The notes under the pieces: generated by a model
Databases searched by the model: none
Seen by the model: the letters and a program-made list of their open reading frames with translations, nothing else
What the model was told of the DNA's origin: nothing
Made by a program: the position numbers and the translations under genes
Assembly (NCBI GenBank): GCA_039096225.1
Contig: JBBPEB010000009.1
Location: forward strand, 806,001-870,000
Reading direction: 5' to 3'
DNA length: 64,000 nt
Origin: Blastocystis sp. Blastoise
Lineage: Eukaryota; Protista; Bigyra: Opalinata
In this document: in pieces, positions 34,093 through 48,327 of the stretch
Numbering within the stretch: position 1 is the first letter of the stretch
How the letters are laid out: each line of letters opens with the position of its first letter

Positions 34093-34902
34093 ATGGATTC
34101 TCCAGTAATTAATAGAATTCCGTTAGTAAGGAAAACAATTCTTGGGTGGATAGTTTTATTTATAACATATATACTTATTGTCTTGTTCACTTCTTTACAA
34201 AGTAATACTATACCAAAGACAATTTCTATTGGATGGAATGAAAGTCACGAACCTATTGCTTATGCATCTTCTGTATTTTTGATATGTGTTACGATTATTC
34301 CTTCGACAGTTATCACTATACTATCCGCTGGTTTAGCATTGATGCCATTATACAATAATAAATTAGCTCTTATTCCTTATAAAGAGTTCTGGCTATCAAT
34401 TGTCAATGTAGAAAAGACTTCATTCATTTTAATATGGCTTTCTTTATTAATTGGAATAGCTTCTAATATATTATCCTTCTCTTTATTCTATCCTATTTGG
34501 CATTTCAATATGAAGATATCCTATTATATTATATTATATTATATTTATTATGTTCATTATTAGTTTATGTTTATTATTATTAGTTTTTGTTTATTATTAT
34601 TAGTTTTTGTTTATTATTATTAGTTTTTGTTTATTATTATTAGTTTATGTTTATTATTATTAGTTTATGTTTATTATTATTGATATGTTTATTATTATAT
34701 TTATTATGTTTACTATTATTGTTTATGTTTACTATTGATATGTTTTCTTAATTGATCACTGTATGGACATTAGTATAGAACAATGTTCGGGTAATTATCT
34801 CTATATTCCTCAAATCATCATATATCTGGTTAATATTATATGCTACTTTGTCATCATTAACTTATATTTCTTTAGCCCTCCACAGTATATATATATATAT
34901 AT

Positions 34903-34937
<35 letters not shown>

Positions 34938-34942
34938 TTTGT

Positions 34943-35009
<67 letters not shown>

Positions 35010-35275
35010 TTTTATATAAAATAATGGTTATATATATATATAGAAAAGAGGGTAAGTTATTAGAGAGTGGAGATTTAGAAGAAGAAGGAGGATGGAAACG
35101 AGAAGTACTCTATTTTAACCCTTTTAATCCAGTTTTATTCCTTCATAAGCGCTTAGGAATGGGATGGACATGTAATCTTGGGAATCCGTGGATTACAGTC
35201 TTTGCCATGGGAATAATCATGATTATTGCGGCTATGTGTCTTTTTGTTTGTGTATTTGTTCCATTACATTATTAA
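34093..35275 (+). CDS. Bacterial-type DUF1648 + DUF5808 membrane protein, 3 exons
   Basis: TM followed by LQSNTIPKTISIGWN (DUF1648-like). C-terminal LYFNPFNPVLFLHKRLGMGWTCNLGNPW (DUF5808-like). AT-AC intron 34516-34759 and GT-AG intron 34885-35043 both join in frame. Confidence 0.8.
34516..34759 (+). other. U12-type AT-AC intron
   Basis: 5' end ATATCCTAT, 3' end TTCTTAATTGATCAC. Phase-0 join NMK|CMDIS. The interior is a 20-nt tandem repeat. Confidence 0.88.
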
Positions 35276-38907: not shown

Positions 38908-39948
38908 TTAGTTTTCCTTGGGGGCTTCTTCAGTCTTAGGAGCTTCTTCGATCTTAGCAGCAGCAGCAGCTTGTTCAGCAAGATGAGCCTTTAATTCTTC
39001 AGGAGTCCAGAATTGGTTAATACCTTCCTTGGGGATTGGTTTCCAAGCAGAAGTAGTGTAACCGTTCTTGTGTAAGTAGTAGTTCTTACAGATTTCATTG
39101 AACCAGAACATAAGACCAGCATAAGGAGTAACCTTAACTAAGTTAGCAACGGTACCTTTCCAGAGACCGAGAACACCCTTAGCCTTAATGGTTTTAGCAA
39201 AACAATCCCAGAGACCATTGAATTCAACATCAGCCTTAGGACCATCCATAGCACAAGATTGAGCTTGCATCTTCTTACGGACAGTATCGAAGGGGAAAGA
39301 GAAAGTTTGAGCAAAAGCACCAGCTAAACAACCATTAACGAAATTTTGCCAACCAGAAAGTTCATTACGAGGTTTACCCCACATAACAGCAAGAACTTCA
39401 TAACCCATGAAAGTAGCACCAGAGAAAGGAATAACACCGAGAATAGAAGCAAGCATACCCTTGTAGAAAGCGAGGAAACCTTCTTCTTTGTAAATCTTCT
39501 TGAAAGCATCAACAATACCGTTATATTTAGGATTGACCTTAGATTGAATGGTAAGACGAGTCTTGACCATATCAAGAGGATAGACGGAACAGGTAGCAAT
39601 GATACCACCAGTAGAACCAGCAATAGCAGCGTTAGTAGCAGACATCTTACCAGTCTTAGCATCAGTGAACATAATCTTAAGAGAATTGAAGGCAGCAAAT
39701 TGAATAGCATTGTAAGGGAAAAGTCTTAAACAAGCAACGAAGTTACCTTTCCAAAGACCCTTCCAACCTTCTTCTTGAATAATATTCTTGAAGGTACCAA
39801 TGAATCCCTTGTGTTGAGCGGAACCGACTTGAGCGATAATCTTGACGACATCAAGAGGAGAGGTGAAAGTTCTAGAACCAGCACCAGCGATACCACCAGA
39901 GATGAATTGTTGCCAGAAAGTTAAACGACGATCCTTCTTTGAACCCAT
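38908..39948 (-). CDS. Mitochondrial carrier (SLC25 family, SLC25A43-like), intronless
   Basis: Three PxDxxK/R repeats (PLDVVK, PLDMVK, PFDTVR) and EGxxGLWKG motifs. The N-terminus KKDRRLT..AQVG resembles SLC25A43. Confidence 0.92.
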   Translation of the reverse strand: MGSKKDRRLTFWQQFISGGIAGAGSRTFTSPLDVVKIIAQVGSAQHKGFIGTFKNIIQEEGWKGLWKGNFVACLRLFPYNAIQFAAFNSLKIMFTDAKTGKMSATNAAIAGSTGGIIATCSVYPLDMVKTRLTIQSKVNPKYNGIVDAFKKIYKEEGFLAFYKGMLASILGVIPFSGATFMGYEVLAVMWGKPRNELSGWQNFVNGCLAGAFAQTFSFPFDTVRKKMQAQSCAMDGPKADVEFNGLWDCFAKTIKAKGVLGLWKGTVANLVKVTPYAGLMFWFNEICKNYYLHKNGYTTSAWKPIPKEGINQFWTPEELKAHLAEQAAAAAKIEEAPKTEEAPKEN

Positions 39949-40671
39949 AGTTATTTTGGAGTTGGAAAATAATTATTTGTGAAAAGACTTTTCACTCATA
40001 ATGATAAATAGCACATCGGATCCATTGAGAGGGAGAAATTAATAGGGGTTTATATAATTATTCAGAGTAGTTATTCTAACGTGAAACCATAAACCAATCA
40101 AAAACAGCGATCATTCATGGGGGTATAATCATTTTGACAAATAAACAAAGTTTTTTCATACATCTACGCCAAATTGGTTTTTACCCCATAGAATGCTTCC
40201 TGTCCAAGAACATTATAATCCAATAAAATGAAAGATTACTCTTTTTGAGGTTCTCGATTTCTTTTACTTCTAGTCAAAATTTCGTAAAACCGTTGCCATT
40301 TCTATTATCCTGTTTCCTTCCATAAGTTTATTCAAAGATCCTTTTTTTCCTTTAGATATCTTAAAGAAAGAATGACTTATCAGTTTCTTATAGAAAATTG
40401 ATATCCTTATTCAATTTAAGTCATTCTAAAATCAATTTATTTCTCTAGTTCCTAGAATTTTTCAAACTCTACATTTTTCAAATCAAAATATGAACTACAG
40501 TTCATTAATCAATAATGAATATAACAAAATAAGCAACATAACAATGTAATGAAAAAAAAAGAACAAAAGATATTGAGCATTTAATGCAAAGACAATTTAT
40601 GAATTCTAGTAATACTACAAAATAATGAATTTAGGTTTTTGATTGATATTATTTTTAAAAAATGTTATCAT

Positions 40672-43971: not shown

Positions 43972-48327
<4,356 letters not shown>

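Follow-up and report, generated by a model that had tools for sequence, protein, structure and literature searches.

An AT-AC intron of apparent U12 type in a Blastocystis membrane-protein gene of likely bacterial ancestry

Organization of the Locus

The DNA analyzed here, referred to as the window, is a 64,000-nucleotide stretch of the genome of Blastocystis sp. Rus-B ('Blastoise'), C3:806001-870000, taken from an assembly of 33.3 Mb in 34 contigs with ~23% GC. Rus-B is an isolate from a Russian tortoise, and its published description gives 33.3 Mb, 33 contigs, and 23.1% GC (PMC10690189). Between positions 34093 and 35275, the window carries a gene for a 259-residue multi-pass membrane protein. 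The gene is built by three exons, which sum to 780 nt and are separated by one AT-AC and one GT-AG intron (Table 1).

Table 1. Coordinates of the gene, its parts, and related loci. Positions without a contig or locus label are those of the window.
Feature	Location	Strand	Description
Exon 1	34093..34515	+	141 codons, open reading frame; residues 1-141 of NCBI protein WA158_000642 (P0001); N-terminal transmembrane helices and a degenerate DUF1648-like motif, aligning with the DUF1648 region of paralogues and bacterial proteins
Intron 1	34516..34759	+	AT-AC, apparent U12 type, 244 nt, phase 0; donor ATATCCTAT at 34516-34524, branch-like TTCTTAAT at 34745-34752, AC at 34758-34759; absent from spliced P0001
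Minisatellite	34556..34736	+	Tandem Repeats Finder: period 20 nt, 9.1 copies, 90% matches; occupies most of intron 1
Exon 2	34760..34884	+	125 nt; Cys-containing loop and fourth transmembrane helix; P0001 residues 142-183
Intron 2	34885..35043	+	GT-AG, phase 2, 159 nt, almost wholly (TATT)n, with (TATT) x31 at 34888-35012; absent from P0001
Exon 3	35044..35275	+	DUF5808 motif (about 35135-35191), last transmembrane helix, TAA stop (35273-35275)
Carrier gene	38911-39972	-	GC-elevated; syntenic counterpart at L016:11499-12458
Donor-like site	46570		perfect ATATCCTTTT
Orthologue in the 43% GC relative	L010:3001-4050		eight exons
U6atac gene	C21:544821-544937 (L003:1501-1617)	-	cmscan alignment
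AT-AC intron of UxaA-like gene	L113:1774-1894 (C25 about 478173-478293)	-	121 nt
Multicopy element, copies 1-6	C13:1011307, C13:1168237, C13:1254110, C17:779114, C20:1054483, C23:350157		with copies 7-12, loci L100-L111, position 801 onward after orientation
Multicopy element, copies 7-12	C8:2334441, C14:76028, C14:1269854, C16:2108818, C30:22717, C31:1327841		as copies 1-6

Taken alone, exon 1 has no match in Pfam. Exon 3 encodes a conserved YxNP...KRxGxGWTxN block that is also present in aligned bacterial proteins. As a side observation, the whole segment from the start of exon 2 to the stop codon (34760-35275) forms a single open frame that includes intron 2, so that retention of this intron would preserve the frame and add ~53 residues of an LFIY repeat; the same repeat frame draws dozens of spurious low-complexity matches in database searches.

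The gene belongs to the eukaryotic genome and is not a contaminant, because its GC content (22%) is like that of the host, it contains two spliceosomal introns, its neighbors are eukaryotic genes, and its synteny is conserved in a relative of 43% GC, described below.

Splice Model and Motifs of the AT-AC Intron

An earlier note on this DNA, made from the letters alone, had described a donor, a branch-like motif followed by 7 nt to the 3' end, an AC terminus, and an in-frame join. All of these lie where it had placed them, and the deposited protein P0001 (259 residues) has the same join, reading ...HFNMK/CMDIS... at the first junction and ...SPPQ/KEGK... at the second, in residue-for-residue agreement with the three-exon model. 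P0001, recorded as a hypothetical protein of Blastocystis sp. Blastoise, is the sole database match that covers the gene in full length. The intron 1 junction cannot slide, since the bases flanking each boundary differ. Use of the 34515/34760 junction in mRNA has indirect support from this protein together with the way in which it was annotated, as the depositors' pipeline demanded RNA-seq support and kept only introns with at least three RNA-seq junction reads (PMC10690189).

The motifs themselves are close to the U12 type without matching it fully. The donor agrees with the extended U12 consensus ATATCCTT at seven of eight positions, while TTCTTAAT departs twice from the branch consensus TCCTTAAC, each time by a C-to-T change; these two departures, and the position of the branch motif near the 3' end (8-9 nt), were counted against a U12 assignment. 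In a genome of 23% GC, such motifs are weak evidence by themselves. For instance, the window contains 30 occurrences of the donor heptamer RTATCCT, with 31 expected, and a loose donor-branch-AC pattern has 349 matches genome-wide, fewer than the 390 of the reversed pattern, which served as a control. Neither is enriched over chance, and both were dropped as evidence. A tight U12 pattern is enriched fourfold (67 occurrences in the genome, 16 in the control), and among the tight-pattern matches listed, the branch motif and the AC are commonly 7-8 nt apart, as they are in intron 1.

These counts bear directly on a competing explanation, in which intron 1 is a U2-type AT-AC intron, or some other non-canonical intron, removed by the major spliceosome and owing its U12 likeness to the AT-rich background. 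The loose motif being no commoner than chance, the imperfect donor and branch motifs of the window, and the short distance from branch to 3' end all fit such an intron, but the fourfold excess of the tight pattern in the genome does not. What carries the case for the U12-type AT-AC intron is not the motifs but the splice model of the deposited protein, the occurrence of this intron in an orthologue, and paralogues that run through the site uninterrupted.

Elsewhere in the window, at position 46570, a perfect donor-like site lies between open frames on either side, and the sole branch-like motif with an AC is ~605 nt downstream; this site may mark another U12 intron or may be a chance occurrence.

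Genes for the Minor Spliceosome

The genome encodes the minor-spliceosome snRNAs U11, U12, and U6atac, with a weak candidate for U4atac. In a search of the whole genome, U11 (62.9 bits) and U6atac (63.8 bits) both score above their Rfam cut-offs. The U12 candidate is full length and has an intact branch-binding box, with a score of 46.8 bits, under the Rfam cut-off of 53, and the U4atac candidate (29.7 bits) has a k-turn and an Sm site. The U11 and U12 genes proposed as a check in the earlier note are thus both found, the second below threshold. In human U6atac, one box pairs with the 5' splice site; its consensus is GAAAGGAGAGA, and the Rus-B gene reads GAGCCGAGAGA at this box, a departure that was counted against removal of intron 1 by the minor spliceosome.

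The presence of minor snRNA genes is a further point against removal of intron 1 by the major spliceosome. In the splicing route that we propose, the minor spliceosome would excise intron 1, with U11 recognizing the ATATCC donor and U12 pairing with TTCTTAAT at 8-9 nt from the 3' end; judging from the sequences of the two partners, the U12 box would still form G-U pairs at the two C-to-T changes of the branch motif.

A Syntenic Orthologue in a Relative of 43% GC

A search of protein representatives returned three fragments of an orthologue (P0088, P0094, and P0097). They come from contigs of ~43% GC (L009-L017), which include NCBI assembly GCA_019973095.1 and match the window collinearly across three genes, i.e., the gene described here, a downstream TPR gene, and a carrier gene. 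The carrier gene stands out in the window by its elevated GC; its syntenic counterpart is 87.5% identical, and on this comparison it is a conserved gene of the lineage and not an orphan.

The orthologue consists of eight exons with the same total length as in Rus-B, 780 nt, and its exon 6 has the size of Rus-B exon 2 (125 nt). Six of its seven introns are GT-AG introns of 33-39 nt. The remaining one is an AT-AC intron at the identical codon boundary and in the identical phase as intron 1, so that the search for the intron in relatives, which had been suggested as a check, gave a positive result across L009-L017. The donor of this intron is ATATCCTT in all 10 loci, and TCCTTCAT is followed by 9 nt that close with AC. 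Its length is 50, 51, 52, 53, 54, or 59 nt depending on the sample, owing to a T-run that varies between two constant ends. Because this variation is out of frame, the segment is non-coding, and GT-AG splicing of it was ruled out, as there is no AG inside.

A complete ATATCCTT donor and a branch motif of the TCCTT type that stay constant among strains despite the varying T-run, in a genome of 43% GC, are difficult to ascribe to AT-rich background. With this and the evidence given above, we regard a U2-type or otherwise non-canonical intron as very unlikely, and on comparative grounds we take intron 1 to be a genuine U12-type AT-AC intron.

Two other features of the intron's history can be read from this comparison. 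Firstly, since the orthologous intron measures only 50-59 nt, the extra length of the Rus-B intron is the product of repeat expansion; in the tortoise lineage, the AT-rich 20-nt minisatellite expanded and lengthened the intron about fivefold, from some 50 nt to 244 nt. Secondly, we infer that the intron is older than the deep split that separates the AT-rich tortoise lineage from the 43% GC relative; how deep this split is was judged by GC content, by the size of introns, and by the identity of proteins. Within the same 780-nt coding sequence, the Rus-B gene has two introns and the relative has seven, which points to heavy intron turnover in this gene.

Paralogues and the Age of the Intron

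Rus-B contains two paralogues of the gene, P0091 on contig C31 and P0090 on contig C32, and the three copies are ~25% identical to one another. Both paralogues run uninterrupted over the AT-AC site (WKYN-x-V-C...), and because they align across it without a gap, the AT-AC intron appears to have neither added to nor removed from the protein. The other introns are distributed differently. The position and phase of intron 2 are common to both paralogues and the orthologue, and a phase-0 intron after YYN-x-x is present in both paralogues and in the 43% GC orthologue and absent from the Rus-B gene. The AT-AC intron is confined to the orthologue group of the window gene and is found in neither P0090 nor P0091. 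Its distribution is consistent with either a gain on the branch leading to the orthologue group or an earlier gain followed by a single loss in the paralogue branch.

The earlier note had read the intron as a sign of ongoing minor-intron creation in this lineage. A recent gain, confined to the tortoise lineage and with minor introns still being created there, would agree with the lack of the intron in both paralogues of the same genome, and recent gain has been suggested for the minor introns of Blastocystis (PMC10639083). It is extremely unlikely for this intron, because the syntenic orthologue has it at the identical codon boundary and in the identical phase, in a relative whose GC differs by 20 points and whose introns measure 33-39 nt. 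This makes it an old intron common to both lineages, and because it predates the split from that relative, it says nothing on present-day creation.

Protein Family and Bacterial Relatives

Assignment of the gene to a DUF1648/DUF5808 family, as proposed in the earlier note, is partly confirmed by Pfam. Pfam DUF5808 (PF19124) is matched by exon 3 alone with 30.3 bits and by P0001 with 27.1 bits, against a cut-off of 26.3. Pfam DUF1648 (PF07853) is not matched by P0001 even at E-values up to 10; it is detected only in the two paralogues, P0091 (40.7 bits) and P0090 (45 bits), both of which also have the DUF5808 block. Since only the paralogues match this profile, DUF1648 membership of the window gene rests on its homology to them. 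In NCBIfam, none of the three copies has a family match.

The claim that the family is typically prokaryotic agrees with what the searches recovered, in that the recognized members outside this lineage are all bacterial. The Rus-B protein aligns collinearly with bacterial proteins over its full length, and relatives occur in at least 582 bacterial species (counted with one genome per prokaryotic species), among Bacillota, Acidobacteriota, Verrucomicrobiota, and others. The Atlas clusters nearest to the protein carry the label 'Bacteria 100%', the named matches are Binataceae and Sphaerobacter, and the short matches inspected look bacterial. Among the matches inspected, eukaryotic relatives come from the Blastocystis lineage only. 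In a search of 1.84 billion representatives, the single match below 1e-30 was the protein itself, and a word-index protein search with P0001 likewise returned no match besides the query; with exon 1 as the query, the word index, whose length limit leaves out proteins as long as P0001, gave no match.

A phylogenetic tree unites the three Blastocystis copies in a single clade (SH-aLRT 96), within which P0090 and P0091 are sisters (83). The attachment of this clade among the bacteria has only 18% support, with long branches and odd composition, and the nesting within bacteria that the earlier note had proposed to test by a protein phylogeny did not emerge. Because the clade sits on a long branch with such support, no donor can be named. 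Lateral transfer of the gene from bacteria is nevertheless the likely origin, as judged from the distribution of its relatives.

The unsettled place of this long-branched clade among bacteria leaves some room for a different origin, by which the gene is an ancient eukaryotic one, inherited vertically and lost in nearly all other eukaryotes, and the AT-AC intron could be ancestral. The low identity among the three paralogues, only about 25%, means that the family is old in this lineage and agrees with such a history. Yet, among the matches inspected, every recognizable one outside the Blastocystis lineage is bacterial, no representative other than the protein itself came below the threshold given above, and the paralogues lack the intron. 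We consider vertical descent unlikely, and lateral transfer followed by gain of the intron remains the preferred account.

Proposed History of the Intron

Bacteria have no spliceosomal introns. Because of this, and because the other family members seen are bacterial, the intron was most probably inserted after the gene entered the Blastocystis lineage, into a reading frame that was continuous, and before the AT-rich tortoise lineage parted from the short-intron relative of 43% GC. Both the transfer and the direction of change, i.e., gain and not loss, are deduced from comparison. The idea in the earlier note that the intron arose after lateral transfer holds up as the most economical reading, given a bacterial family; nesting in a bacterial clade is not supported by the tree. 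We place the probability that the AT-AC intron was gained after a bacterial gene transfer, and is old and shared and not a product of ongoing creation, at roughly 0.7.

An AT-AC intron in a bacteria-derived gene cannot predate the transfer; it would therefore amount to direct, datable evidence of gain. Taken singly, the present case is of limited value, for it concerns an old intron held in common with a relative and a deduced transfer for which the tree places no donor, and the general phenomenon is already published.

Other AT-AC Introns in the Genome

A second candidate of the same kind lies in a UxaA-like gene on contig C25, whose AT-AC intron of 121 nt begins with ATATCCTAT, the same donor as in intron 1. 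The exons on its two sides match positions 149-172 and 173-232 of the Pfam GD_AH_C profile, and the exon join appears seamless because profile positions 172 and 173 adjoin. The UxaA-like (D-galactarate/altronate dehydratase) family is typically bacterial. A better-than-even case can be made that the Blastocystis lineage has made U12-type AT-AC introns de novo in bacteria-derived genes at least twice, once in the DUF1648-DUF5808 gene and once in the UxaA-like gene.

The genome also contains a multicopy gene or dispersed repeat, present in at least 12 copies, all of which have one and the same U12-like AT-AC intron; this measures 75-84 nt, with a length that differs between copies. The exon sequence is nearly identical among them over 60 nt or more on either side, and the upstream exon encodes an unrecognized protein. 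Introners are intron-generating transposable elements and represent one possible way of making introns in bulk (PMC12130899). The 12-copy sequence was rejected as an introner, because its exon flanks are identical too, as expected of a multicopy gene. Among unrelated genes, no family of similar intron sequences was found.

Comparison with Known Systems

Minor (U12-type) introns are usually viewed as relics of early eukaryotes that have been lost and almost never gained. The premise that they are unexpected in an organism such as this one is out of date. Blastocystis ST1 was reported to contain 346 U12-type introns (PMC5608401, Gentekaki et al. 2017) and, in a later analysis, 253, of which 77% belong to the AT-AC subtype and 49% lie in phase 0, with recent gain offered as a possible reason (PMC10639083, Larue and Roy 2023). 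The same work describes significant minor-intron gain as extremely rare (PMC10639083). Intron 1 of Rus-B resembles the ST1 introns in its genus, the AT-AC subtype, the phase-0 bias, the accompanying minor snRNA genes, and the recent or lineage-specific gain already proposed for them. It differs in being 244 nt long, where the ST1 median is about 39 nt, and in belonging to an AT-rich tortoise lineage. Unlike introns in core eukaryotic genes, it lies in a host gene with bacterial relatives, which gives it a maximum age. Intron 1 is thus a new example inside a published phenomenon, and the bacterial character of its host gene is what makes this maximum age useful. In the literature, we found no paper that connects U12 introns with laterally acquired genes.

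The bacterial DUF1648-DUF5808 proteins (PF07853, PF19124) share with the Rus-B protein the order of transmembrane helices, the C-terminal YYNP...KRxGxGWTxN block, and collinearity over the full length, and their N-terminal P-x-x-I-P-x-H-W-N motif is clear in the Rus-B paralogues. In contrast to them, the Rus-B gene has introns, occurs as three diverged paralogues, carries a DUF1648 motif that has decayed below detection by Pfam, and encodes a Cys-containing loop insert where the AT-AC intron sits.

A known parallel is Physarum polycephalum, a case of lineage-specific creation of U12-type introns with massive expansion (reference 20 of PMC10639083), which the literature presents as the one clear exception to the rule that minor introns are almost never gained. 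The scale and the argument are different in Rus-B, with one intron and a second in the UxaA-like gene, and with gain argued from the bacterial ancestry of the host genes and not from counts. If the two gains are real, laterally acquired genes could act as time-stamped substrates on which minor-intron gain is proved and dated, and Blastocystis would follow Physarum as the second clear case in which minor introns have been created.
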